In this document: in pieces, positions 7,751 through 28,627 of the stretch
Position numbering within the stretch: position 1 is the first letter of the stretch
Layout: every line of letters starts with the position of its first letter
NCBI GenBank assembly: GCA_002794465.1
Contig: MTSL01000117.1
Location: 3,135-35,134, forward strand
DNA length: 32,000 nucleotides
Source of the DNA: Paramicrosporidium saccamoebae KSL3
Taxonomy: Eukaryota; Fungi; Cryptomycota
Reading direction: 5' to 3'
Made by a program: the position numbers and the translations under genes
The notes under the pieces: model-generated
What the model was told of the DNA's origin: nothing
The model's database searches: none
What the model saw: only the letters and a program-made list of their open reading frames with translations

Positions 7751-7975
7751 CAAGTCAGCTGTCTTGCTATTGGGCCATCCTGTCAGCCAACTATCCAGCC
7801 AAAGTGTTTTCTGCTGCTCGGATTTATCCAAGTGTGCACAGGACATGTAAATGTGTATTAATAAACACTTGCACCACAGCATCTTGGTAAAACATTCATA
7901 TTTGTACAATTTTTGCGCGTGCTGCTAACAAATGGGAAACCGGGGTATCGGCCACCCTCGACACCCCCTCGGATA

Positions 7976-8483
7976 ATGGTACCTTGACCCATATATTCCT
8001 CATCCATCCATTTAGTCTGTAAACGTCCCCGAGAAGGCCGGCTTCCAGCACATTCTCCGTCTCCTCAACACCAACGTTGACGGTCGCCAGAAGGTCATGT
8101 TTGCCCTTACTGCCATCAAGGGTTGCGGTCGCCGCTACGCTGGCCTCGTCTGCCGCAAGGCCGAGGTGGACCTGAACAAGCGCGCTGGTGAGCTCGACCA
8201 GGTTGAGTTGGAGCGCATCATCACCATCATGCAGAACCCCAAGAACTACAAGATCCCCGATTGGTTCCTCAATCGTCAAAAGGACCACAAGGACGGAAAG
8301 TTCTCCCAGCTGTTGTCGAACAACTTGGATAACAAGCTTCGTGAGGATTTGGAGTACATGAAGAAGATTCGCGTGCATCGTGGACTTCGTCACTCTTGGG
8401 GTCTGCGTGTGCGCGGTCAGCACACCAAGACTACTGGTCGTCGCGGACGCACTATGGGTGTGTCCAAGAAGCGTGGAGGCTAA
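7976..8483 (+). CDS. RPS18: 40S ribosomal protein S18/uS13 (exon 1 is ATG only; intron 7979-8015)
   Basis: Spliced [24 protein letters not shown]...[11 protein letters not shown]...[24 protein letters not shown]. Confidence 0.98.
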
Positions 8484-8514: not shown

Positions 8515-8672
8515 ACTATGCAATAAATTCAATATTGAGAGCTATGCGGTAAATCCACGGGTACTATATGCAGTAAATTCTCGGGCACTATGTAGTAAAT
8601 TCTCGGGCACTATATGCAGTAAATTCTCGGGCACTATATGCAGGAAATTCCCGAGGACTATGCAGTAAATTT
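8515..8672. repeat. Minisatellite, ~7 units of 22-24 bp, ACTA(TA)TGCAGTAAATTCTCGGGC
   Basis: Directly visible head-to-tail units: central ones near-identical, outer ones degenerate. Confidence 0.9.
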
Positions 8673-8971: not shown

Positions 8972-11344
8972 TTACAGAGTGTCATCCAGGCTACCGTCGT
9001 CAATGTTTAAGAAGCCCTGAGATTGCTGTACATGTTTAAGAGCAACTTTGCTTCTCTCTGACTTATCGGAGCCATGATCGGATAGAAGCTTTTCCATGGA
9101 CAAGAGTAAACTCTCCACTTTAGTCAACTCGAATTTTCCGTTTGCGATGGGCAACAAAACGTCGTTAGAGATTTTCAGAGTTTCGGCACAATTCTTCAAG
9201 TAAGTTTTTACCGAATCCATGGAGGGCCCCATATCACGGCACGTGACATTCCAATCAAGCCGCAGGGAATGAGCCATGTTCCAAGATTGGCAATCTAGTA
9301 GAACCAACAGATATGGCGATCCTTGGTAAAAGGTCACCCGAATAAAGAATCCAAGGATTGAAAATAGTTCATCATTTTGGTCAAACTCGTCAACAATCGT
9401 TCCAATCCCGATAATTTGCACGATACCACCGGGCGATGGGAGAGAATCTTTTAAAAAGTCGAGGACCGTCTCTCTCGACCTGCCAACCAGATCCAGCACA
9501 GTGATGGTCACGGTCCGGATGGACGTCAAACTCCTTGACAAGGTTGGCGGCATTCTTGTCAAATAACTGACAGGGATATTTACATTGCTAGAGAATGCAA
9601 ACTGAAGTATGGGCTCTATGAAACAGGGAATGTCTCGTTCTAAACATTGCAACGATATACTGGACAACGTACCTAGCCAAGAGCAGGAGGTGGCACTCCT
9701 ATAGACGGTCGAAGAAGTAACTGTCAGGACAAGCAAGTCGATGCACTCTTGGAATAGGCTCTGTAGGGGACCAGTGAATGGCTTTGACTGAATAGTCTTT
9801 CGTTTCGTGCTCGGCACAATCTCTACACTTTGAACAAGGATTATTGGATGCTACCTCTAAAGGCCAGTTGGAAATCGTCGTCGGTAATTTGCAGCAACTC
9901 TACACTTTTCGTCAATTCCGAGATATCCGGAGGTGGCAGATGCAAGTCATAAGCGCGTGGACATGACCGGCGAATGGCTCTTAGACTAGCCTCTACGCAC
10001 AGAGCTTTTAAATCGGCACCCGAAAAATCAACAGCCTCCTGTGCCAGCCTGTTGAGCAGCTCGTCACTGAGAGGAGGCGTCCAGGAAGACGTGTGGATTT
10101 TTAAAATGTCAAAACGAGCCTCTTTAGTTGGAAGCCTGAAGGAAAATTCACGATCAAATCTACCTGGCCTCCGCAATGCAGCGTCGATAGAGTTGATCCG
10201 ATTGGTAGCACCAATGACGACGACATTCCCCCGATCGTCAAGCCCATCCATCAGTGCCAGCAGAGTGGCCACTAGCGAAATATGACTTTGCTCCTGCTTT
10301 CCTGTTCGCTCTGGCGCCAGACCATCAATCTCATCAAAAAATATAATGGAAGGCTGCTGTTCACGAGCCTTTTTGAAAAGAAGCCGCAAATTCTTCTCTG
10401 CCTCCCCAATCCACTTGCTTAGGCAATCAGATCCGTTCGTCATGAAGAATGAAACCTTGCGGTCACTGCCGGGAATTGAACAATTCTCAGCCAAAAGTCT
10501 AGCCAACAGTGTTTTACCCGTCCCAGGCGGTCCATGAAAGAGAACTCCCCGAGGAGGCGAAATGCCAAGATTTGCAAAAACTATGGGATACAAAAGGGGA
10601 AATACAATCATCTCTTTTAGCTTTCTAATGTCTAGACATGTTACAAAGACTCTAGCAAGACTTACACTCATCTAACCCTGCGATCCTATCCACTAGGGGT
10701 TTGGGAGGAACTACGGCGGTTGTTTCACTCTCCTTGGGAGCCAGTCTCGACTTGTTGCCATTAACCTCTCTGCCCGAATCGCCTCTGAGAGTACTCCTCC
10801 TTGGCTGACTATCATCAACCTCGCCGTCGGAATCGTCTCGGAGAATGCTCCTCCTTGTTTTGCCTCTCCTAATCTCCTCGTGATCGTCACTAAACTCGGC
10901 ACTGAACATGTCCCTGAGATTGTATGACGCATCTCGATGCACGAGTCGAGGAGATTTCCTGGTACCACGACGATCATCACGCTGTTGAGGAATGATAAAG
11001 GTCCCATCTTCTTCCATATTTACGCGGCCCACATATTGCGCCTTTACACGACGACTGCGACGTGGATGATCATCTCGGGAGCGTACATGTATTCGCATGA
11101 GGGGGTCATCCAACGAGTCAGCCTCAGAGACAGTCTTTGTTGGACTGGTGCTCCGCTTTCTACAAAGTTCGTAACGTCGAGGAGGTCTGTCATGGTCGCG
11201 CTCCGAACCTATCGCTTAGTGGTCAAATGGACACGTACGGACAAACTCAAAGAATTCGGAATTGTGATTATCAAGGTCTGCATTTTTATCGGAAAAGGCC
11301 TCGCTGAGGATACTATCTGCATCGCTATGGTCTCCGTCCTTCAT
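8972..11344 (-). CDS. YTA7: Yta7/ATAD2-like AAA+ ATPase, short form (introns 11209-11238, 10632-10665, 9823-9854)
   Basis: IAGLDEYIRKLKEMIVFPLLYP, GVLFHGPPGTGKT, DCLSKWIGEAE, IIFFDEIDGLAP, SLVATLLALMDGLDDRG, RRPGRFDREF. Acidic/Arg N-terminus and degenerate second AAA domain. Spliced length 758 aa. Confidence 0.85.
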
Positions 11345-16206: not shown

Positions 16207-17241
16207 TTAGAGAAGCACAGGAACTAGAGCAATAGTAAGACTGACCGCAAAGAGACCGAGGGAAGCGCCCAGTGTGTTGGAACCATTTTCGCTGAATCCC
16301 GTAATATCTGCACACTTGGCCTCCAGGGCCTTGGCCTGTTTATCATCCAAATCACTCTTGACTACAGATAAAGCCATACAGGCATGGTTTCGTTTAAACT
16401 GGCGACGATTAAGAATTTCCTGATTGCGAAGAGAAGGGTCTTTGGCCGCAAGCTTTGCTGCAGAGCTGGCGGGAAGACCAAAACTGGCAACTTGGAGGGG
16501 AGTCATGGCGTTCCAGCAATCCTTGGAGAGCTTGGAAGCTTGATCGCGATGGAGCATGGTGAGCGCGGCAGGTGCAACAGCGCACCATTGCTTAGCAGTG
16601 AAACCGGCAAAGCTATCACTGGGAATCATGGAGAGTTGGAGGGCGGAAATCTTGGAGAAGGCATCGTCATTGAGGGAGGAGATGAGGGTCTCGCCGAAGC
16701 GGCGGAGTGCCACAGGATTTAGCGCTGCAACATTGTCTGCCGTCAAGAAGGCTGAAATTACTTTGGCGTCAGAGGTTTCAAAGATGGCCTCAAGAAGTAT
16801 TGGCTCACGGATAGCATATCCAGTAAAGCCAGCCGGCAAGTCGTCTAAATTCAGTTTGGCCAGGATCTCTGTTAATTGTTGTGGGGTCAGAGAGATGTCA
16901 GACACTTTGGATTTGGCAATCTGCTCAGCAGTCTTTCCGTCAAATTTTGCCCATTCGGAGGTATTAATGTTTGACAAACAGTCAGCACAGAGATCAGTCA
17001 CATCAAATTTCTTCAGACACTCGGCAGTGAGACCCGCGCAGGCCTTTGCGTCTTTTAATGCATTGAGCTCTTTGACGGTGAGCTTTTCACAGTCGGCTTT
17101 GCGTAGCTGCTTAGCAGAGGCGTCGGGGCTGAGTACTGATGTCTCAGCAGTCTTGGCCTTGGTGGCAGCATCCTTATTTTCATCGTTTCCAGCCGCAACA
17201 ACGGCAAGCAGGCAGAGTCCAATGATATTCTTAATAAGCAT
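16207..17241 (-). CDS. Secreted, probably GPI-anchored octapeptide-repeat surface protein (P1)
   Basis: Signal peptide MLIKNIIGLCLLAVVAAG; Cys-containing N-terminal region; 11 consecutive 8-residue repeats; C-terminal small-residue site plus hydrophobic tail (SENGSNTLGASLGLFAVSLTIALVPVLL). Confidence 0.8.
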   Translation of the reverse strand: MLIKNIIGLCLLAVVAAGNDENKDAATKAKTAETSVLSPDASAKQLRKADCEKLTVKELNALKDAKACAGLTAECLKKFDVTDLCADCLSNINTSEWAKFDGKTAEQIAKSKVSDISLTPQQLTEILAKLNLDDLPAGFTGYAIREPILLEAIFETSDAKVISAFLTADNVAALNPVALRRFGETLISSLNDDAFSKISALQLSMIPSDSFAGFTAKQWCAVAPAALTMLHRDQASKLSKDCWNAMTPLQVASFGLPASSAAKLAAKDPSLRNQEILNRRQFKRNHACMALSVVKSDLDDKQAKALEAKCADITGFSENGSNTLGASLGLFAVSLTIALVPVLL

Positions 17242-17410: not shown

Positions 17411-17675
17411 ATAAAGGGTCATTTACAATCTTGTGTGCACTGTGAGGTGGTACAATTACATGCAGTATATTATGCCAATAAAGGGTGCGTTACTTGTAAT
17501 TTTGCGTGCACTATAGGATGGTATGTTTACAGACTAGGTTGCCAACAAAAGGGGCATTATTTGTAATTTTAAACTAGATTTACAAACAGTGTATTATGCC
17601 AATATAGGGGTACTACTCGTAATGTTAAACTAGATTTACGTGCAGTATATTATGCCAATAAAAAGGGCATCACTT
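17411..17675. repeat. Degenerate tandem array, units of 56-67 bp (ATAAAGGG...TAATTTT...TTTAC...TATTATGCCA)
   Basis: Unit starts at 17411, 17478, 17545, 17602 and 17658; the last is cut at the inverted-repeat element. Confidence 0.85.
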
Positions 17676-18043
17676 TGTCGCGTAGTGGGGATGATACCAC
17701 GGACTTTGTCAGGCGGGAAGGGAGGTTTGTTTACTGCTGATCCTATAATAGTATGGATACACATCTCCTTGTCCTTAAATATCCAGCTAATCGACACTAT
17801 CGCATAAATATATCCTCATGTGACGTAGAAGACTGATTAACATGTCTTTTGGAAATAGTTCCCTAGTTTGGAGAAGAGATAATCAGAACAATCGCTGAAG
17901 GATAATGAGATCTATGTCTTATCATTTGAGGATTATTACTATGCAGCTCGGGAGACTATAAAAGGGCTATTGGATTAAAAATGAGCGGGTTCTCCTCCCG
18001 CTTGACAAAGTCCGTAGTATTGTATTATCCCCACTACGCGACA
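17676..18043. mobile_element. Non-autonomous MITE/foldback-like element, 368 bp, ~50-bp imperfect terminal inverted repeats, TGT...ACA ends
   Basis: Left end TGTCGCGTAGTGGGGATGATA-----CCACGGACTTTGTCAGGCGGGA versus reverse complement of the right end TGTCGCGTAGTGGGGATAATACAATACTACGGACTTTGTCAAGCGGGA. No long ORF and no clean target-site duplication. Confidence 0.75.
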
Positions 18044-18097
18044 CTCATATCTTCGAATACCCAACCAATCAATCCTCTACGTCACAACTTTACTTAC

Positions 18098-18190
18098 AAA
18101 ACCTATATTTACGCACAATCGGTTGTGCCAATAAAGGGACATTGTTTCACAATTTTGAACTATATTTACATGCATTACATTATGCCATAA
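18098..18190. repeat. Continuation of the 56-67 bp array right of the element, overlapping the P2 stop codon
   Basis: CTATATTTACG...TTGTGCCAATAAAGGGACATTGTTTCACAATTTTGAACTATATTTACATGCATTACATTATGCCA aligns to the array unit. Confidence 0.75.
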
Positions 18191-19142
18191 CAGCGACTAG
18201 GAGAAGGGCCGCCATCGCAACCATCGTACTGGTGTGTGGCAGAGTTACAGACGCTCCACTGCTGCTATCCCACAATGCCTTGCATCTAGAACTCAAGGCC
18301 TTTGCTGTAGATTTCGAAACGTGATTCTTCCATCTGACTGCTGAAGAACACTGATGTTCCTTGATGTAGTTCTCCCGATCAACTTTTTGTGCCTTCTTAT
18401 CTCCTTTGCTAGAGTCCACTTTGGGAGGCCTTGGTTCGGCTCCAAGGTGGTTGGCCTGCTCCACCGTCATGCCCTCCAAGGCATCGCCGAGGATGGCGTC
18501 CATCTGTGGCTTCTTGATTGAGGTAAAGACCTCGGGATTGATCTTTTTCATGAGTTTCTTGTCAACTCCGGACAAAAAGTCAGCTGTCAGGCGTTTGAAA
18601 CACTTTGGTTGGACATCTTTAAGGGCATCCGATCCCATCGATTCGGCCATGTCTTTATCCAGCTCACCACAGAAGGTGGGGTCTATTGTCTTAATGTTTT
18701 CCGCAGTGAACAGGCGGGCCATGAGCTTTCCAGGGATCTTGTGCTTTCTCAGACGCGTTATGGCGTTTGTATCAGCGACAATTAGATTCACAAAGTCCGT
18801 AGCCGGATTGTTCTTCCAGTCATTTTTATCAAGGAATGCCTTGAGGAACTCGGGGGTCCTTGGGAGAGTTGCTACATGATCTTTGTTGCTGGTGAGCTCC
18901 ACCATCTGCTTTGTTGGGAACTTGTCAAGGACTGATGAAGGGATCTTTTCGATGCATTTAGAACCGAGATTGGCGATGCCGTCTTTGATCGCTGCAATAC
19001 AGACCTCATCAAAGAGCGAAGATTTACACAACTTGGGCTCCTTGTTGAGCTGTTCAGCGGTGACCTCCTTGCAGTTATTCAACGCGGTTGACGCTTGCGC
19101 TTGGGCGATGATCGCAAAGGCGATGGTAAAGGACCTTATCAT
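18180..19142 (-). CDS. Secreted, probably GPI-anchored octapeptide-repeat surface protein (P2), paralog of P1
   Basis: Signal peptide MIRSFTIAFAIIAQAQA; 11 octads ending MTVEQANHLG; HxC...AKALxxxC block as in P1; SSSG plus hydrophobic tail. Confidence 0.82.
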   Translation of the reverse strand: MIRSFTIAFAIIAQAQASTALNNCKEVTAEQLNKEPKLCKSSLFDEVCIAAIKDGIANLGSKCIEKIPSSVLDKFPTKQMVELTSNKDHVATLPRTPEFLKAFLDKNDWKNNPATDFVNLIVADTNAITRLRKHKIPGKLMARLFTAENIKTIDPTFCGELDKDMAESMGSDALKDVQPKCFKRLTADFLSGVDKKLMKKINPEVFTSIKKPQMDAILGDALEGMTVEQANHLGAEPRPPKVDSSKGDKKAQKVDRENYIKEHQCSSAVRWKNHVSKSTAKALSSRCKALWDSSSGASVTLPHTSTMVAMAALLLVAVMA

Positions 19143-20682: not shown

Positions 20683-22821
20683 ATGTATCACGGATACGCG
20701 GTTGTTCTTGCCGGCCTTGTGGCCAGTGCAACGGCAAAGATTAATGTATCAGCGGAACAGGAGCAATTTAACACTCATCCCCAAGACATTGCATTCTTGT
20801 CTCTATTTTATGGAAAGTATGCTTTCCAGCAGCACACTCCGGCTTTATTTAAAGGGATGGAAATGCGTACATTTTCAAAGTTTCTGAAAGAGCGTCCTCA
20901 ATTCGTGCCGCTACTCACCTCCAAAGATATGGCCGCTCTCGATGATGCGAGAATGTGCCGCGCCCTCTCCCGCTTTGCAATGTCTCTTGCACCAGAAGCT
21001 TCTAGTGGAATATCAGCAGAGTGTCTCTTGGCGATTTTGAGATCGAGACACATGGATATAAATAAATGGGCCGTTGAAGCCCGTATAAAGCTGATTCCTG
21101 AACGGACATTCAAGACTGGAGGTCCCGAGCTATTAAAGCTACTCCGCACAGTTCTTCATCGTCTCTCTGAGTCTCAAATTCGCTCATTGCTATCCACAGC
21201 CTCCACCGCCCCCTCTATTCACCTCAACTGGCTGCTTAGACTAAACACTAAGCAGCTTGGAGTATTCTCTGCCGATCATTATGCTGAAATGCAAGGCTGG
21301 GATGCTCCGCATCTTGTTACTTCTCTGATTACTCGCCTGCCCGATTATACCTTTTCCAAGATTGACTTTTCTCTGCAAGCATCCTTGTTCGCCGCAATGA
21401 CCAAGGGCCAAGTGGAGAAATTTACCCACTGTCAGTACATGCGTCCCGACATGCTATCCCGTAACGCTCTCCCTGGCCTAAAGTCTGCTTGCTTCAAAGC
21501 CTATCTCGCTGGGTTGGATGGCAACCAGGACCAAATTCACGTATTGGGTCGGATGATTGTCTTTGCTGATGAGCAACTTCTTGAAAAGCTAAATGAAGAC
21601 GATGTCAAGTTGATCCATGCTGACGACTGGGTGCACTTTAGTGGCGAGCAGTTGCAACATCTACCAGCCGCATCTTGCGGTGGCATTGACAAAGATGCTC
21701 GCCCCGCCGATAACATGTTTTTCATCCCAACCCCCGTATGTTTCGGGAAGCTCAATCCACGCCATCAGCTGTCATTTCTCAAAAGACGCATATACGAACT
21801 CCCTCCCTCCACTCTTCGTCACGTTGATCGTGACTCTGTCGATGCCTGGCCCGAGAAAATGAAGACTCTGATCAAATTCCGGTTGCCTGGAAGCATGATC
21901 CAGCAACTTGGCGCAGACCTGGACAAGGAATCACACCCGTGCTCTTTGTTTTCCTGTCTTAATTGTGTCCGTAATAATCCGCTCCTCATGGCCAATATGG
22001 GACGACACTGTGCCAACGCCATCCCCTCTCGACTCTTGGAGAATGCCAATGTCTCCATATACCGCAAAATGCTCTCTGGTGTGTTTATAGCGCCGCCTGG
22101 CCTTCGACTAGAGAGTCTTCAGACTATGCACACAACAACCCAGACATCTCTCATTAAGGATGTTGAATTCTGTGCAGTTCTCTCCTATCCTGAGTTTGGC
22201 GCTTTGAAAAATGTTGCCAAACAATTTACTTCGGAATGCGTTCAAAAATTCTGCTTCCTGGAGCAGTTGAGGAAGGACGATATCGGAACCCTCCATGACA
22301 GAGCATTCTCTGCTTTTGATGCTGTAAGCTTCAAACTCATCTCAGATCCTTTCCACTTGACTGGCACCCAGTTCCATTTCCTCGGATCAGACTTGCCAAA
22401 TGACTCTGGTGCGAATCACCCGATAAACGCACTAGAAGGCGGAAAAGTTTCCCAGCTGCCCACCAACTACCTCGCACAATTTACTGCACAACATCTTGGA
22501 AACATGCGTCCTGTCCTCGTGGCCGCGCTGACGGCCGACCAGGTGAGTAAGCTTCCCGCCGAAGCATTCAGACGTCTCCCTGTAGAACAATTCAATGCCC
22601 TCCATAGTGAGGCATGCTCCGTAGAGCAATTGGAAAATTTGGGTGCTGATCTCTCCGAGGACACTGTGTACAAGCTCTCATCTGCCCAAATTACTCGTCT
22701 GGGTGGGAGTGCCAAGACGCTATTGATGAAGAATTCACGGCTGACTTCCAAGGCATTTGCTGCTGTACCGAGCTGGGCTGTTATGATGATGGCTGTCGGT
22801 TTCGCCGCCCTGCTCATTTAA
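20683..22821 (+). CDS. Large secreted, probably GPI-anchored octapeptide-repeat surface protein (P3)
   Basis: Signal peptide MYHGYAVVLAGLVASATA; several octad runs (LPTNYLAQ FTAQHLGN MRPVLVAA LTADQVSK LPAEAFRR LPVEQFNA); recurring LG(A/S)D...HP motif; hydrophobic C-terminus. Confidence 0.78.
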   Translation: MYHGYAVVLAGLVASATAKINVSAEQEQFNTHPQDIAFLSLFYGKYAFQQHTPALFKGMEMRTFSKFLKERPQFVPLLTSKDMAALDDARMCRALSRFAMSLAPEASSGISAECLLAILRSRHMDINKWAVEARIKLIPERTFKTGGPELLKLLRTVLHRLSESQIRSLLSTASTAPSIHLNWLLRLNTKQLGVFSADHYAEMQGWDAPHLVTSLITRLPDYTFSKIDFSLQASLFAAMTKGQVEKFTHCQYMRPDMLSRNALPGLKSACFKAYLAGLDGNQDQIHVLGRMIVFADEQLLEKLNEDDVKLIHADDWVHFSGEQLQHLPAASCGGIDKDARPADNMFFIPTPVCFGKLNPRHQLSFLKRRIYELPPSTLRHVDRDSVDAWPEKMKTLIKFRLPGSMIQQLGADLDKESHPCSLFSCLNCVRNNPLLMANMGRHCANAIPSRLLENANVSIYRKMLSGVFIAPPGLRLESLQTMHTTTQTSLIKDVEFCAVLSYPEFGALKNVAKQFTSECVQKFCFLEQLRKDDIGTLHDRAFSAFDAVSFKLISDPFHLTGTQFHFLGSDLPNDSGANHPINALEGGKVSQLPTNYLAQFTAQHLGNMRPVLVAALTADQVSKLPAEAFRRLPVEQFNALHSEACSVEQLENLGADLSEDTVYKLSSAQITRLGGSAKTLLMKNSRLTSKAFAAVPSWAVMMMAVGFAALLI

Positions 22822-22851
22822 GCATAATTTTATAAATCCATAAACTAAATC

Positions 22852-25073
22852 ATGCAGGCTACTAAGCAGGTCAAAAAGCTTGTCATAAAAAACTTTCGAG
22901 GTTTGCAGTCTGTTAGGTGTGACTTAATATTGTAGGTCAAAGACTTCCCGAAGACTTTGAGTCTTCGTCATGGTCGACCCTGCAGGCAGGCTTGAAGGAA
23001 ATATTCGCTGGACATGCAGACCGTGTCAGTATGGAAACACTTTATCGAACCTGTGAAAATGTGTGTCGCTGCCGTATGGCTCATCCCCTTTATTCAAAAC
23101 TCTATGCCGAGTGTGAGGCATTTGCTCAGAGCTACGGACCGCGTATCCAGCAAATTGAAGTTGGCGGACGCAAGGATGTCGAATTGCTTCGCCGTGTCAA
23201 TGACATTTGGACAGAGTACACGCAGCGCATCAAGGTGGTCTGTAATGTCTTTCTCTATCTCGATCGTGTTTTCGTCCTTAATCGTCCTGAACTTGCCTCT
23301 ATCTGGGACTTTGGCATGAATTTATTTCGTGTGCACGCCTTTAATGATGACTATGGCAAGAATTTACTACTTCCTGCACTTCTCAATACGATCACCAGCG
23401 ATCGACATTCTGAAATGTCCGAAGTAAGCACCTTGGTGGCAGATGTCTTTTCTATGCTAACGAGTCTAAAACTCATGGACGAGTGGGCAAATTCAAAGGT
23501 TGCTCAAGGGACTACTAGTTTCTATAGTGAGAAGGCAACCGAAAAGCTGGCCTCAATGGAAATGTCCGGCTATCTGGAGTATACTAGAGGAAGCATTGAC
23601 AGCGAAACTGTTCGCTATGAAAATTATGGACTTGATCGTCGTTTCTCGTCAGATCTTGTTAGAAGAGTTCAGGACGCTTTACTAGTTTCTCATCTGGACG
23701 AAATCCTGGAAAAGGGTCTCGAAGCTCTTGTCTTGGAAAAAAACTTTCGCACCTTGTCACTGTTATACATTCTCTGCGCTGAAACCGAGTCTCTGGAAAA
23801 GCTCCGAAATCACTGGCTATTGCTCGCCAAAAACAGGGGATCCGCACTGGTCAATGACACAAGCAAAGACGAACTGCTTATTGGGGAACTGGTTGATTTT
23901 AAGGACAATTTGAATTCCATCCTGGTAGATTCCTTCCAAGAAAATGTCCTATTTGCCGACGCCATCAAGGAAGCATTTGAATCGTTTATGAACAGTCGCC
24001 AAAGTCGTCCCGCTGAGCTTATTGCAAAGTATGCAGACTACCAATTGCGTGGCGACAAGGACATTTCTGATGAGCAGCTATCTCTGATTATGGACAAGAT
24101 TATAACAATTTTCAGATTCGTCCAAGGTAAGGATGTATTTGAGTCATTCTTTAAGAAGGGTCTGGCCAGACGTTTGCTAATGTCCCGCTCGACTTCGATT
24201 GAGGCAGAGAAGGATTTTGTGGCCAGATTAAAGCAGGAGTGTGGCTCGGCATTTACAAGCCGTCTTGAGGGAATGTTTAAAGACATGGAAACTTCCAAAG
24301 ATACCATGTATTCGTATTTGCATTCCACTGCATATGAAAAGAAGAACAGTAGAATAGAATTTAACACTGCCATTGTGACCACCGGACTGTGGCCATATCC
24401 GCCCCTGATCACGATGGCTCTTCCTGAAGCCATTACCAGGGAGCAAACCCAGTTTGAGGGCTTTTATCATGGACAACACAAGGGCCGCGTCCTCACTTGG
24501 CATCAAGGTTTGGGCCATTGCGTGATCAAGGCCAATTTTCCGCTTGGAGCAAAGGAATTACAAGTGTCCATCCCCCAAGCATCAGTCTTGCTGCAATTCA
24601 ATGACGACGAAGAACTGGACTATTCCGAGATTCGCAATCGCACCGAAATGGACGATGTAACTCTGGCGCGCACACTCCAGTCCCTCTCTTGTGGTAAAAT
24701 TGGCGTTTTAACAAAGTCGCCCCGCGGACGCGAAGTCTCAATTGCTGATCGCTTTTCATTCAATCGCGAATTCGCATCCAAGCATCAAAAGATCCGCATT
24801 AATGCCGGTTCTTCACGCGACACACCCGAGGAGCCTGCAATGATCTCTCCGGAAGCACCTTCAGATCTGCAGTATCAGATCGATGCTGCGATTGTGCGTT
24901 TATTGAAGGAGCATAAGAGTCTGGCAATGGAGAAGCTTGTGGGCCTAATTTCCCAACAGCTTGGCTGCAATATAACAATGACCGAGTTTAATCGCAGAAT
25001 GCCATCGTTGATTGAGCGCGAGTTTGTTGGACAAGATCCAGAGAGCCCCAATATTTATACTTATATTATCTAA
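22852..25073 (+). CDS. CUL4: Cullin-4 (intron 22901-22935)
   Basis: The spliced N-terminus contains KKLVIKNF (CUL4 signature); cullin motifs VFLYLDR, AELIAKY, GKDVFESFFKKGLARRLL, LKQECGSAFTSRLEGMFKDM; C-terminal QIDAAIVRLLK. Confidence 0.92.
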
Positions 25074-25384
25074 ATGGATTCATCGTCAGACAGTCCTGTA
25101 ATCAATGGTTCAGCTTTTAATGAAAATAACTGCTTTAAACTGCTTGTAGTCACAAGAGTCTGGTGATGGGGAAGCTTGTGGAACTAATGTTTCAACAGCT
25201 TGGTTATAATGACCGGGTTTAATCGCAGAATGCCATCGTTAATTGAGCGCGAGTTTGTTAGACGAGATCCAGAGAGTCCCAATATTTGTACTTGTATTAT
25301 CTAAATGGATTCATCGTCAGAAACTCCTGCAATGAATACATCAGCTTCTAATGAAAATAGCTGCTTTAAACTAGTTGCAGCCTC
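24915..25384. repeat. Tandem duplication of the CUL4/BRF-like 3' junction (copy A 24915-25153, copy B 25154-25384)
   Basis: The copies align end to end with about 30 substitutions and one 8-bp deletion in copy B (hand count). Confidence 0.95.
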
Positions 25385-26488
25385 AATCTGCTCTTCAGAG
25401 ACATTGTGAAGCAGAAGCCGTTCGATAATAATGTCCTCGATCATGACGTTTTTGCTTTCACCACCATGTTCTATTGCCAAAGACAGTCTTTGCTTGGCCA
25501 TTTGGATTTGATCAGCCCGTCCTTTGGCCCTTTCAGTGCTTTTTTTGAACGAAGGCGGGGCCTTTCCTCCCGGCATGGTATATCTCCGATGCTTTAAAAC
25601 ATCCAAGGCCACGATGGCTATCTTGGTCCTCTTAAAATGCGACGTGCTTTCTTGCAAAAGGGGATTTCTCTTGGCATCCTCGATAAGGGCATCTTTGAGC
25701 TCATTAATCCGTTGTGTTGTAGTGTCATGTGCAACTCCCACCGCGTCGCAAGAAGTCTTGATTAGCAATTTCAACTCTGCAGACTTGCATTGCAAAAGAT
25801 TTAAAATCTCGAATGAAAGAATAAGGGCGGCCATTGAGATGGCTTCGCATTTCCGCCCCTCCACCAAAGAGTGGTCCTCGGCAAGTTTGCAAAGATCATT
25901 TGCCACAGAGAGGACTAGACTCGTATTTTCCACATTGCAGACATTGGACAGACTTCCTAGCTGTCTCTCAAGGAATAGCGCAGGGTCGTGGCTAACATTG
26001 GCATTGTTCCCCAGAATCTGCATGGTATACGGCCTCATCAAAGAAATGGCTGAGAATAGATCAACGGTGGATTCACCTATTGCCTGCGAAATGTCAGATA
26101 TTGAAACTGGGAGGGTTCCTGATCCTCTGCCTAGGAGATACAAAAGAGCTACTGCCGCACGACGTCCTGCTCGCCCCCTATTTACAACTTTATCGGCAAT
26201 GGCCCTGTCCAGCAGTGTGATTGTCCGTTCCCCCACCGATGACGGAATACTTAACAGTGTACAGATAGACTTGACCAGGTTATGCAAGGCTAGGCTATTA
26301 TAAGATACTGACTTTAGATGCACTCGTTGTGTATGGCCCAATTCCGCCCATAGTCGATTTCGGTCTTCGTCGTCCTTTAGCACTCCCTCCACCAGGGAAT
26401 CCTGAGATAGCACCAGACCACACTCTGTACAAACGATTACGTCGTCAGTCTTTGAACGTTTCCGATGCAGACATTCATTATCGGCCAT
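25301..26488 (-). CDS. TFIIB-related factor (BRF family, short BRF2-like length)
   Basis: N-terminal zinc ribbon (C-x-H...IVCTECGLVL), two cyclin-fold repeats (RGRAGRRAAVALLYL; GRKCEAISMAALILS), PPSF motif. Confidence 0.75.
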   Translation of the reverse strand: MADNECLHRKRSKTDDVIVCTECGLVLSQDSLVEGVLKDDEDRNRLWAELGHTQRVHLKSVSYNSLALHNLVKSICTLLSIPSSVGERTITLLDRAIADKVVNRGRAGRRAAVALLYLLGRGSGTLPVSISDISQAIGESTVDLFSAISLMRPYTMQILGNNANVSHDPALFLERQLGSLSNVCNVENTSLVLSVANDLCKLAEDHSLVEGRKCEAISMAALILSFEILNLLQCKSAELKLLIKTSCDAVGVAHDTTTQRINELKDALIEDAKRNPLLQESTSHFKRTKIAIVALDVLKHRRYTMPGGKAPPSFKKSTERAKGRADQIQMAKQRLSLAIEHGGESKNVMIEDIIIERLLLHNVSEEQIEAATSLKQLFSLEADVFIAGVSDDESI

Positions 26489-26538
26489 ATAGGCCTACCC
26501 TGCAACCGTGGCCAACCCTGGTCCTGCCTTAGTTCACT

Positions 26539-27226
26539 ATGGGTAAGTAGCCATTCCATCCCCATTCATCCATCCTCCTTCACCTCCCACACCTTTCCCC
26601 ATGACAGTATCTAACACCATATAGGCATTAGTCGTGACAGTCGCCACAAGCGATCGGCATCGGGAGCCAAGCGCGCCCACTACCGCAAGAAGCGCAAGTT
26701 TGAACTCGGTCGCCAACCGGCCAACACCAAGCTTGCCGGACCCAAGCGTGTCCATATCGTGCGCACCCGCGGTGGTAACTTTAAGCATCGCGCGCTCCGT
26801 CTTGACTCTGGCAACTTTTCGTGGGGAAGCGAGGCCGTCACCCGCAAGACTCGCGTTATCGATGTCGTCTACAACGCCAGCAACAATGAGTTGGTTCGCA
26901 CCAAGACCTTGGTGAAGAATGCCATTGTGCAGATTGATGCTACGCCGTTCCGTCAATGGTGGGAGTCTCACTATGGACAGGTATTGAGCAAGCGCAAGAC
27001 CGCCGAGACTGCTGAGGCAAAGAAGGTGTCGTCCAGTGTTGCCCGCAAGCACACTGACCGTACTGAGGATGCCAAGGTGGAGCAACACGTGAATGATCAG
27101 TTCAACACTGGCCGTCTGTACGCTGCCATCACTTCTCGCCCTGGACAGAGCGGACGTTGCGATGGGTATATTCTCGAGGGTAAGGAACTTGATTTCTACC
27201 TCAAGAAGATTAAGCATAAGAAGTAA
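26539..27226 (+). CDS. RPS8: 40S ribosomal protein S8/eS8 (exon 1 is ATGG; intron 26543-26624)
   Basis: Spliced [38 protein letters not shown]...[15 protein letters not shown]...[19 protein letters not shown]. The intron has GTAAGT, CTAAC and TAG. Confidence 0.98.
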
Positions 27227-27318
27227 CGGTCTTTATAAGAACCAGTTCTAAAATAATACACTTGTCTCATTCAAAGGCGCTATTGTTGGCATGGGTCTCT
27301 TGGCCCTGTCTTGTGTGT

Positions 27319-28587
27319 ATGACCAAGAACCAGGTCTCGGACGTACAGGCAGTTGTCCTTTGTGGGCCCGGACACCGACTGAGTCCACTGACGGATGAGG
27401 AGAAACTGCCCAAATGTATGCTAAACATTGCAAACCGTCCAATGCTCTACTATCCTCTGACATGGCTCATGCAGGCGGGCATTACGGATGTCATTGTGGT
27501 TGCCAGCACTACAGGTGGCCAACGACTGCAGAACTATCTGACCCGTATATTTGACGGTGGACGGGTGGAATTGGTGCTCCTTGAAGAGTATCGTGGTACC
27601 ATGGACGCTCTTCTTGCCGTAAAGTCAAGACTAAAGAATGATTTCATGGTCGTGTCTTGTGACTTGATCACAGACTTTCCAGTTGCCAAGTTTGTGGAAA
27701 GGTGCCGACTGAGCAGCGCCTTGGTTACGTCTCTTCTGGCCACACCCACCTGCATGTGCTTTGGCCAGCAGCCAAAAGAATCCACAGAGCCCAAGCATCG
27801 GCTCTTAGACGGTAACATTTCACGTGTGGCCATTTATTGAATAGAAGGTGGAATAGTTGTCGGATTAGATGGAGGGAAGGAGAGGACACTCACATGGATG
27901 CATCAGGACGACATTGAAGAAGGAAACATGACATTTTCAATGGCACTCTTGACGAGATATCCAAATGTTCATCTGTACACTGATCTCAGCGATATGCACT
28001 GCTATTTATTCAGACGTGAGATTTTCGAAAAGGAAGAGATGATGCACAAACTGTTCTCAATCCGGGAAGAATTCATCCCCAAGCTTGTTAAACGTCAATT
28101 TGGTGTGGAGGATTATCATCGCTGTGAAGTACTCACTGCCGACTCGGGGTATTGCTTACGGGCAAACACCCTGAGTAGCCTTGCAGAATGCGGCAAACAG
28201 CTCGCCAGGATTATGGGATCAAATGGAACTCGTCTAGTGTCCCAAGCGGCAGAGATTGGACAAAAGACGCAGATTGGAAATGACTCGTTGATCGGCGACC
28301 AGAGCAAAGTGGGTGACAAGTCTTCTGTGAAGCGATCCACAGTGGGGAACTATGTTCACATTGGAAATAATGTCAAGATTAGCAACTCCATCATCATGGA
28401 CTATGCCCAGATTGAGGATGGAGTCAAATTGGAGGGTTGTATTGTTGGATATAAGGCTACCATTGGCGAGAAGTGCTACTTGAAAGATTGTGATGTTGGC
28501 TGCGAGTATGTGGTCGAAAGAGACACTACTCTGAAGGGCGAGTTGATGGGATGCAGCCGCGAAATGTTTATCGATCACAAAGAGTAG
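27319..28587 (+). CDS. GCD1: Translation initiation factor eIF2B gamma subunit (intron 27812-27844)
   Basis: QAVVLCGPGHRLSPL, LPKCMLNIANRPMLYYPLTWL, VVSCDLITD (nucleotidyltransferase-like fold) and C-terminal hexapeptide left-handed beta-helix repeats. Confidence 0.88.
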
Positions 28588-28627
28588 AGAATAAACTATT
28601 GCTTAATTACATGATCTATGACACGTA

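Follow-up and report, generated by a model that had tools for sequence, protein, structure and literature searches.

The 3′-3′ junction between the CUL4 gene and the BRF-like gene of Paramicrosporidium saccamoebae, a parasite of amoebae, carries a tandem duplication that runs across the ends of both convergent genes. The junction lies on contig MTSL01000117.1, within a 32,000-nt stretch that we refer to as the window, and all positions are given in window coordinates (Table 1). Very probably, a lineage-specific tandem duplication of ~239 bp in the nuclear genome undid an overlap between the two stop codons and left spare gene ends that are now decaying, with neutral fixation as the favored course.

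Table 1. Features of the CUL4/BRF junction in P. saccamoebae (window coordinates)
Feature	Position	Strand	Length	Description
Copy A	24912-25150		~239 nt	Functional last 53 CUL4 codons, CTAA, spare BRF tail
Copy B	25151-25386		~231-236 nt	Spare CUL4 tail, CTAA, functional last ~27 BRF codons
Duplication junction	25146-25155			...TTGTAGT/CACAAGAG...; unit end gives way to unit start within 5 nt
Stop-to-stop spacer	25074-25300		227 nt	Composed wholly of both spare tails
CUL4-type cullin CDS	23031-25073	+		First ATG at 23031; stop TAA 25071-25073, in copy A
Spare CUL4 tail	25151-25300	+	150 nt	Downstream of BRF stop; frameshifted by 8-nt loss
BRF-like CDS (TFIIIB subunit, TFIIB family)	25301-26488	-	395 aa	Stop TAG 25301-25303 (CTA on + strand), in copy B
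Spare BRF tail	25074-25150	-	77 nt	TTSSLKQLFSLKAEPLITGLSDDESI; first 77 nt after CUL4 stop; AATGAAAATAA on + strand
CTAA, copy A	25070-25073			TAA serves CUL4; antisense TAG unused, ends spare BRF tail
CTAA, copy B	25301-25304			Antisense TAG serves BRF; sense TAA unused, ends spare cullin tail

The two copies are arranged head to tail and adjoin directly, with nothing between them, at 80-92% identity. A repeat search returned two direct repeats, one of 179 nt (24977-25155 versus 25208-25386; 88% identity, offset 231) and one of 60 nt (24912-24971 versus 25151-25210; 80% identity, offset 239). Gapped local alignment joined both blocks into a single unit (24912-25149 in copy A versus 25151-25380 in copy B; score 300), in which copy B lacks 8 nt at 25204-25208 whose counterpart lies within 24965-24976 of copy A. 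The copies diverge at 8-17% of sites, with ~28 substitutions in all, and indels account for a further 8 nt. A preliminary description of this DNA had placed a tandem duplication at 24915-25384; repeat search and alignment agree on the head-to-tail arrangement and set its boundaries at 24912-25386, 2-3 nt from those positions. The interpretation given in that description is supported wherever sequence can address it, with the qualifications set out below.

Similarity between the spacer and the flanking genes was far above that of shuffled sequence. In alignments of the 227-nt spacer, the real cullin tail scored 192 (null maximum, 27) and the real BRF tail scored 94 (null maximum, 25). In a control set of 66 spacer-versus-flank comparisons drawn from the window and from six loci of relatives, the CUL4/BRF junction was the sole clear case, and the window contained no further copy of the unit. 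TRF, run with default and low score settings, reported no tandem repeat at the CUL4/BRF junction, the divergence and gaps between the copies being too great for it. The three unit boundaries are alike, reading CATAA at 24912, CACAA at 25151, and CTCAA at 25382; after divergence, three of the five positions of this breakpoint microhomology are common to all.

Both genes could be assigned with the aid of homologs. The cullin open reading frame is open from 22992 (22992-25073, + strand), and its product has Cullin, Cullin_AB, and Nedd8 Pfam domains on record. In a protein search, the best named relatives were cullin-4A and cullin-4B (44-48% identity), in keeping with the CUL4 label of the preliminary description. 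The cullin C-terminus, ...IEREFVGQDPESPNIYTYII before the stop, agrees with the cullin ends of relatives, with which it has in common the tail pattern ...IEREF..DP....Y.Y.. followed by the stop. The product of the opposing gene is predicted to be BRF, with an N-terminal zinc ribbon and two cyclin repeats, nearer to Brf1/BRF2 than to TFIIB. A single-sequence search of this protein against the PDB gave no match, and a profile built from five homologs was required; the profile matched yeast Brf1 best (6eu0_Z, E = 8.8e-12), followed by human BRF2 (4.8e-8) and TFIIB (~1e-4), which bears out the BRF-like label. Residues C6, H8, C20, and C23 are invariant among the homologs. The ORF table and the deposited gene models agree on both stops in Table 1, which place the end of the cullin gene in copy A and that of the BRF-like gene in copy B, as had been described.

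In each copy, a cullin tail and a BRF tail meet inside CTAA, so that two stop codons overlap there, exactly as previously noted. The 27 nt around CTAA are identical between the copies (25064-25090 and 25295-25321). Because the tails abut within CTAA in both copies, parsimony indicates that the single-copy precursor would have had CUL4 and BRF stops sharing two bases. The preliminary description had called this overlap ancestral. That stands for the sequence just before the duplication, both copies of which carry CTAA, but does not extend deep into the clade. In six uncultured relative lineages, the two genes are likewise convergent, and their ends are separated by ordinary, unduplicated spacers of 30, 37, 69, 84, 113, and 177 nt. 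Given non-overlapping ends in all six, the overlap is a state of the P. saccamoebae lineage rather than the deep ancestral arrangement, and we reject a stop overlap ancestral to the clade. Non-overlapping ends in relatives had been named beforehand as counterevidence; they count against the earlier reading in this weak sense alone, and the content of the two copies outweighs them.

The halves of the two copies that are not attached to a gene body had been described as decaying, and the changes in each agree with this. In the cullin frame, the spare CUL4 tail reads HKSLVMGKLVELMFQQLGYNDRV before a stop, with a frameshift from the 8-nt loss and an early stop. Its proximal 93 nt retain 92.5% identity to copy A. 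Five amino acid changes (Y to C twice, G to R, Q to R, and E to G) are all derived with respect to the relatives: copy A retains FVGQDPE and YTY, like the relatives designated L003 and L002, whereas copy B has FVRRDPE and CTC and has lost the conserved Y-x-Y. At the nucleotide level, copy B is more distant than copy A from all five relatives compared (for L003, 64.5% versus 69.9% identity). On the other side of the junction, 12 of 76 nt differ between the spare BRF tail, TTSSLKQLFSLKAEPLITGLSDDESI, and the functional one, AATSLKQLFSLEADVFIAGVSDDESI, each followed by a stop. Two residues that are invariant in five homologs are lost from the spare tail (A371 to T and E381 to K), which also lies farther from L002, L003, and L005 than its functional counterpart does.

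These changes fit complementary degeneration, in which each gene works from a different copy and its tail in the other copy carries derived or disabling changes. A Nei-Gojobori comparison of A and B gave an overall omega of ~0.67, with 8.5 synonymous and 20.5 non-synonymous differences, as expected when a neutral lineage is compared with a constrained one. Divergence is uneven: the central 114 nt differ at 6% and the outer parts at 19% (Fisher P = 0.0045, with the partition chosen post hoc). We attribute the low central divergence to stronger constraint on the functional partner there; alternatively, gene conversion may have acted in part, or the spare sequence may itself be constrained. The earlier wording that decompaction had been "caught in progress" is generous for copies separated by this many substitutions and indels, roughly 7-8% neutral divergence per copy.

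The duplication appears to be confined to the P. saccamoebae lineage. The nearest relative in a neighbor-joining tree of cullins is L003, with 68% identity in the C-terminal half of the cullin. Copies A and B are 92.5% identical, whereas copy A is 70% identical to this nearest relative; the duplication is therefore younger than that split. A single-copy CTAA junction in a closer relative or strain was not found in protein searches with BRF-like proteins and the cullin C-terminal half, which were non-exhaustive (the cullin search did not list the cullins of L002 and L003, although these are the closest), nor in JGI metagenomes by an exact 24-nt DNA scan or a protein-guided scan. The collections searched contain only one assembly of P. 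saccamoebae. In a search for a shared 3′ motif, TGTAAATAT was seen past the BRF stop of both L002 and L003, and TACAAATAT past that of P. saccamoebae; this could be chance in A/T-rich sequence.

We propose the following course of events. In the ancestor, the CUL4 and BRF stops would have overlapped in CTAA. About 239 bp would then have been duplicated at a microhomology of ≤5 nt, whether by replication slippage, template switching, or unequal exchange, so that the final 53 CUL4 codons and the final ~27 BRF codons were copied head to tail. Because the microhomology at the breakpoint is imperfect after divergence, we can only infer that the mechanism was an ordinary microhomology or slippage tandem duplication. 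CUL4, on the left, now reads into the first copy, and BRF, on the right, into the second. Such an event would be tolerated because a copy that spans the boundary always leaves each gene one intact end, and with neither protein altered, neutral fixation is possible. The inner half-copies would have been dead on arrival because no gene body was attached to them, and they now form the 227-bp intergenic spacer and are eroding. By its geometry, this arrangement gives each gene up to 227 nt of non-coding DNA before the coding sequence of its partner. The private 3′ region ascribed to each gene in the preliminary description is predicted from that geometry. Since the new downstream DNA begins with the sequence that was there before the event, any 3′-end signals that once lay antisense in the partner's tail would have come along.

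We favor neutral over selected fixation, but the latter deserves consideration. Decompaction might have been positively selected for reducing convergent collision and sense-antisense pairing, with the spares kept for the 3′-end processing signals of the neighboring genes. By geometry, the 3′-end signals before the event necessarily lay antisense within the partner's coding sequence, and the duplication kept that sequence at the same distance from each stop. An AATAAA-like element, AATGAAAATAA, is located 46-57 nt past the CUL4 stop; in the window as in relatives, many stops are followed by AATAAA or a near variant. The center of the unit, which takes in the first 17 nt past each stop, is more alike between the copies than are the outer parts, and the spacer at this junction is non-zero in six of six relative lineages. 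However, other convergent pairs in this genome and its relatives function with spacers of 40 nt (28588-28627 in the window) or 18 nt (in L004), which indicates that tight packing is tolerated. In copy B, the A/T-rich element closest to the BRF stop is not conserved but degraded, from TATAAGTATAAATATT to TACAAGTACAAATATT, and the omega values are consistent with neutral decay. On balance, we regard positive selection as possible but not likely.

One might ask whether the event represents something more general, namely, that tail duplications spanning a junction are a recurrent route to new intergenic DNA in highly compacted eukaryotes. Spacers would be born from coding tails and then erode; in the sister lineage, L003, the 177-nt spacer would then be what is left of an earlier such duplication at the same junction, almost beyond recognition, and the 30-177 nt of the other relatives would be end states. 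We consider this generalization doubtful. When the spacers of relatives were searched for hidden tail duplications, L003 alone gave a weak signal, which was insecure under the 66-test control.

The same lineage is central to the idea that the duplication is old, was common to L003, and has been homogenized by gene conversion, or that tails have been duplicated repeatedly at this junction. L003 is nearest in the cullin tree and has the longest spacer among the relatives. That spacer is colinear with its own cullin tail (P = 0.003 by dinucleotide shuffles), and its last codons read ...GPHNIYII beside the BRF stop; the uneven divergence between A and B could also reflect conversion. However, at P = 0.0075, the L003 match is about what chance would yield among 66 tests, in a test that is somewhat anti-conservative (12% of comparisons with P < 0.05), and the spacer resembles neither the BRF tail of L003 nor the P. 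saccamoebae unit. Ongoing homogenization is also opposed by the ~28 differences between the copies and by the loss of 8 nt that shifts the frame. An old or recurrent duplication is thus quite improbable, and we retain a recent, lineage-specific one.

We give very little credence to a newly acquired function of the spare tails, whether as trans-acting antisense 3′ UTRs or through a peptide encoded by a 31-codon ATG ORF in copy B (25209-25304). By geometry, the region past the CUL4 stop and the final 76 nt of the BRF coding sequence are 84% complementary; for the region past the BRF stop and the final 93 nt of the CUL4 coding sequence, the figure is 92.5%, and there are exact shared stretches of 27 nt and ~23 nt. 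The mini-ORF is intact, but it lacks both conserved tyrosines and has accumulated five non-synonymous versus two synonymous changes. The region has no Rfam match, and RNAi machinery is not mentioned in the genome paper.

An assembly artefact, in which a short-read assembler stitched two haplotypes or co-occurring strains in tandem, would be a natural concern here, as the organism is likely diploid and its genome was assembled with Velvet from metagenomic reads of 80 nt, yet we find it highly unlikely. Heterozygosity is ~0.05% (3,832 SNPs in 7.3 Mb) versus a copy divergence of 8-17% plus 8 nt of indels, and the copies therefore cannot be two haplotypes, the possibility that had been raised against the duplication. 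The copies share no exact word longer than 27 nt, which is below the Velvet k of 53, so no de Bruijn path leads from the end of one to the start of the other unless reads contain the junction. Complementary, polarized decay is not expected from stitched functional alleles, and the locus lies in the middle of a 121-kb contig. A TE or MITE insertion as the source of the spacer was rejected, as 24000-26500 contains no inverted repeats, the two tails fully explain the spacer, and the window holds no other copy; an ncRNA or tRNA in the spacer was likewise rejected, with no Rfam family and no tRNA match.

Compaction of parasite genomes, as in microsporidia, rozellids, and nucleomorphs, is usually told as one-way intergenic loss that ends in overlaps. 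Overlap of genes and transcripts in compacted eukaryotic genomes, namely, those of microsporidia and nucleomorphs, is reportedly the subject of work by Williams et al. in 2005 (PNAS) and Corradi et al. in 2008. The P. saccamoebae genome is similarly compact, with 76% gene space, and like those genomes it has convergent genes tens of nucleotides or less apart, so their 3′ ends must run into the neighbor. Transcription signals have been described for E. cuniculi (PMC2803860). Whereas the compaction literature deals with compaction and its consequences, the CUL4/BRF locus represents the opposite step, a clean, sequence-dated reverse in which coding sequence became a 227-bp spacer with both proteins untouched. 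It also illustrates a rule: among duplications with intragenic breakpoints, those that span a gene boundary are the sole automatically harmless class. As a single and mechanistically ordinary event, it serves as a textbook illustration rather than a discovery, and it would carry more weight if many such cases occurred genome-wide.

In the literature searched, we found no described case of genes being un-overlapped naturally by tandem duplication, and several known systems resemble this one in part. Overlapping phage genes are said to have been refactored in T7.1. Synthetic decompression has also been applied to overlapping phage genes, for example, in the decompressed phiX174 (bioRxiv 10.1101/2020.06.10.143693; PMC11527146). 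As in P. saccamoebae, the shared sequence is doubled there and each gene has a full private copy. However, phage decompression is engineered and mostly concerns same-strand coding overlaps, whereas the CUL4/BRF event is natural and eukaryotic, the coding overlap was that of convergent stops only, and it was the 3′ flanks that were truly shared. Tandem duplication-random loss (TDRL) in animal mitochondrial genomes (PMC2576254 and PMC4223735 are examples) likewise involves a tandem duplication across gene boundaries, complementary degeneration, and pseudogene remnants that become new spacers. In TDRL, whole genes are duplicated, a random copy dies, and gene order changes; at the CUL4/BRF junction, which is nuclear, only tails were duplicated, the loss was predetermined, gene order was kept, and an overlap was removed. 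Truncated gene fragments such as psi-ycf1 and psi-rps19 are known from the borders of plastid inverted repeats. There, too, the edge of a duplication falls inside a gene and leaves a decaying partial end beside an intact neighbor, but the plastid fragments arise from expansion of a large inverted repeat that is copy-corrected to identity, whereas the P. saccamoebae copies form a small direct tandem repeat and are diverging freely.

Repeat searches and gapped local alignment revealed two head-to-tail copies, A and B, across the junction at which CUL4 converges on the BRF-like gene. Both copies share the layout of cullin tail, CTAA, and BRF tail. On the right, 179 nt form an ungapped alignment with 88% identity at an offset of 231, and on the left, 60 nt align with 80% identity at an offset of 239; copy B lacks 8 nt of copy A (within 24965-24976, gap site in copy B 25204-25208), and the 27 nt surrounding CTAA do not differ. 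The similarity is far above chance. The 227-nt spacer between the two stop codons aligned to the cullin tail with a score of 192 (shuffled-spacer maximum, 27) and to the BRF tail with a score of 94 (maximum, 25), bearing out the tandem duplication reported in the preliminary description. The ORFs and deposited gene models also place the CUL4 end in copy A and the BRF-like end in copy B, as described there. Among 66 comparisons of spacers with flanking genes in the window and the loci of six relatives, this junction was the sole unambiguous case. No second local direct repeat of this kind was found in the 32-kb window, nor was any found in ~47 kb of relatives' DNA.

Coordinates of features at the CUL4/BRF junction and elsewhere (window positions unless a locus is named; L002-L009 are loci of uncultured relatives)
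Feature	Position	Strand	Details
Copy A	24912-25150		Repeat search, gapped local alignment
Copy B	25151-25386		Repeat search, gapped local alignment
CUL4 stop TAA	25071-25073	+	ORF table; in copy A; deposited model agrees
BRF-like CDS	25301..26488	-	ORF table; 395 aa; stop 25301-25303 in copy B; deposited model agrees
ATG ORF in spare cullin tail	25209-25304	+	31 codons
Deposited fusion with CUL4	20683-25073		1417 aa; 11416-15806 in L001, the P. saccamoebae locus
Deposited fusion with S8e	26759-28587		611 aa; L001 7902-9950
22-24-nt tandem repeat	8543-8671		About five copies
~56-nt repeat	17451-18205		Several scattered copies
CUL4/BRF spacer, L002			30 nt
CUL4/BRF spacer, L006	L006 7417-7453		37 nt
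CUL4/BRF spacer, L004	L004 7417-7485		69 nt
CUL4/BRF spacer, L005			84 nt
CUL4/BRF spacer, L009			113 nt
CUL4/BRF spacer, L003	L003 2054-2230		177 nt

The gene labels are fair, since the closest named relatives of the cullin are cullin-4A/4B (44-48% identical across the last 350 aa) and a five-homologue profile of the BRF-like protein favors yeast Brf1 (E = 8.8e-12) over human BRF2 (4.8e-8) and TFIIB (about 1e-4). Protein searches detected very few relatives of the BRF-like protein. The deposited models join a 712-aa ORF to CUL4, and ribosomal protein S8e to an eIF2B-gamma/GMPPB-like protein. Both fusions are probably annotation errors, because the fused partners are separate genes in relatives.

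The half-copies that neither gene uses (the spare tails) are decaying, as previously proposed, and the polarized changes support this beyond the frameshift. The cullin tail of copy A, TEFNRRMPSLIEREFVGQDPESPNIYTYII before the stop, matches the tails of L003 (GDFNRRMPSLIEREYVGQDPETPGMYIYIS, stop) and L002 (...FIAQDPEDLDVYTYVA, stop); copy B carries FVRRDPE and CTC. When polarized by the relatives' protein tails, all five non-synonymous differences between the cullin tails are derived in copy B, and at the nucleotide level five of five relatives are farther from copy B than from copy A. The spare cullin tail is frameshifted and stops early, and this detail was correctly described, as were both BRF-tail peptides. 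The BRF-tail motif A-[TS]-x4-L-x2-L-E is present in 5/5 homologues, with A371 and E381 invariant. The functional tail in copy B retains this motif (AATSLKQLFSLE), whereas the spare tail in copy A carries the replacements A371T and E381K, together with V-to-P and F-to-L changes, and is the more distant of the two from three relatives. Overall, the copies differ by 8.5 synonymous and 20.5 non-synonymous changes (Nei-Gojobori), and the resulting omega of about 0.67 is the expectation for one neutral and one constrained lineage. Neither conserved tyrosine survives in the short ATG ORF of the spare cullin tail (MTGFNRRMPSLIEREFVRRDPESPNICTCII, stop), and this ORF presumably has no significance.

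The copies have not diverged evenly: they differ at 6% of the central 114 nt (24977-25090) and at 19% of the 112 outer nt (partition chosen post hoc, Fisher p = 0.0045), and each of the seven central differences is a transition. This pattern probably reflects stronger constraint on the functional partner in the center, and partial gene conversion may be a source of it.

We compared orthologous junctions from six uncultured relatives (L002, L003, L004, L005, L006, and L009) in Logan, ENA, and JGI assemblies. Sources for L002-L009 were Logan SRR12926096, DRR438482, SRR21707646, SRR24693327, SRR28204431/2, and SRR14578328, and ENA ERZ27237304; L007 and L008 have the cullin protein of L006. The order Peptidase_A22B - CUL4 -> <- BRF - S8e - eIF2B-like is kept in all relatives. 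At least six uncultured Paramicrosporidium-related lineages (54-68% identical over the C-terminal region of the cullin) have the CUL4/BRF gene order, and the L002-L009 lineages are known only from metagenome or SRA-assembly contigs. In all six spacers the stops do not overlap, and none contains a recognizable tail duplication. Because the tails abut in CTAA in both copies, the single-copy sequence just before the duplication had overlapping stop codons, as the preliminary description held. That description had also made the overlap ancestral; however, the spacers separating the relatives' stops indicate that it was not the deep ancestral arrangement.

In a cullin neighbor-joining tree, the nearest relative is L003 (68% aa identity in the cullin C-half). 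Over the last 31 cullin codons, identity is 92.5% between copies A and B and 70% between copy A and L003, which places the duplication in the P. saccamoebae lineage, later than its split from L003. The cullin homology search omitted the closest cullins (L002, 62%; L003, 68%) and the window's own protein, so its failure to return a closer relative is weaker evidence than it appears.

Parsimony favors a history in three steps. At first there would have been a short spacer, such as relatives have; it would then have been wholly lost in the P. saccamoebae lineage, giving CTAA, and a tandem duplication would finally have produced the present spacer. In the strongly conserved proximal cullin block (7 differences in 93 nt), every polarized change lies on the spare copy, which suggests a neutral divergence of about 7-8% per copy since the event. 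Less constrained parts of the copies differ by 16-17%, roughly twice that figure. The duplication is therefore not very recent, and its products are still fully legible. The left boundary reads ...GGAG/CATAAGAG, the junction ...TAGT/CACAAGAG, and the right boundary ...CAGC/CTCAATCT. The switch point lies inside a 5-nt window in which all three are alike (C-N-N-A-A), a likeness that would fit microhomology-mediated or slippage duplication, as far as boundaries this diverged allow inference.

When a tandem duplication crosses a gene boundary, each flanking gene keeps one intact end; such an event is hence silent at the protein level, with the inner half-copies dead on arrival. Neutral fixation is favored on the basis of this silence. 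An adaptive benefit, in which the duplication eased convergent transcription and antisense pairing and the former 3'-end signals travelled along in the spare tails, is possible but unsupported. AATAAA-like elements lie 3' of many stops, including AATGAAAATAA 46-57 nt past the CUL4 stop, and a CUL4 mRNA end inside the spare BRF tail would be compatible with the sequence, though unproven. Against the adaptive reading, tight convergent pairs work elsewhere, with spacers of 40 nt (28588-28627) and 18 nt (in L004), and in copy B the A/T-rich element closest to the BRF stop is degraded.

P. saccamoebae (MTSL00000000), an intranuclear rozellid parasite of Saccamoeba, has a 7.3-Mb genome (47% GC) of which gene space makes up 76% and repeats 0.53%. 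The genome is likely diploid, the heterozygous SNPs analyzed numbering only 3832, and was assembled using Velvet (k = 53) from 80-nt reads (PMC5701793). A two-haplotype artefact, which the preliminary description named as a possible refutation, appears to fail as an explanation: allelic divergence is about 0.05%, compared with 8-17% plus indels between the copies, and stitching of two functional alleles would not be expected to yield complementary, polarized decay. The longest exact word common to the copies (27 nt) is shorter than k, so no graph path joins them unless the junction is in the reads, and the locus lies in the middle of its contig (MTSL01000117.1, 121,202 bp; assembly GCA_002794465.1).

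The event works like mitochondrial tandem duplication-random loss and resembles the "decompression" of phages, in which sequence shared by overlapping genes is duplicated on purpose (10.1101/2020.06.10.143693; PMC11527146). Unlike these, it is a natural nuclear event in which gene tails alone were duplicated, the loss pattern was predetermined, and spacing changed but gene order did not. In the portion of the full-text literature covered, we found no description of natural un-overlapping of convergent eukaryotic genes by tandem duplication. The underlying mutation class is ordinary, and the junction is a new, clean example of an event type already known.

Stop-codon shifts have also remodelled this junction, since between the closely related L004 and L006 (cullin C-half 89% identical; BRF ORFs of 431 and 442 aa) the spacer of one is coding tail of the other. 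The L003 spacer aligns weakly and colinearly to its own cullin tail (p = 0.003, dinucleotide shuffles) and ends ...GPHNIYII, adjoining the BRF stop. In the 66-test control its p = 0.0075 is about the chance expectation, the test being somewhat anti-conservative, and comparisons with the L003 BRF tail and the P. saccamoebae unit gave no signal. It is possibly, but not securely, an older, eroded relic of a similar duplication at the same junction.

Two other repeats lie in the window. One, with a 22-24-nt unit (TATGCAGTAAATTCTCGGGCAC), lies between the ORFs at 7896..8378(-) and 8972..9553(-). The other, a ~56-nt unit (...TAGATTTACGTGCAGTATATTATGCCAATAAAGGG...), is scattered over an unusually long, GC-poor gap (~940 nt, GC 0.42) that separates ORFs 16207..17241(-) and 18180..19142(-); it may represent a minisatellite, or a promoter or terminator element present in multiple copies.
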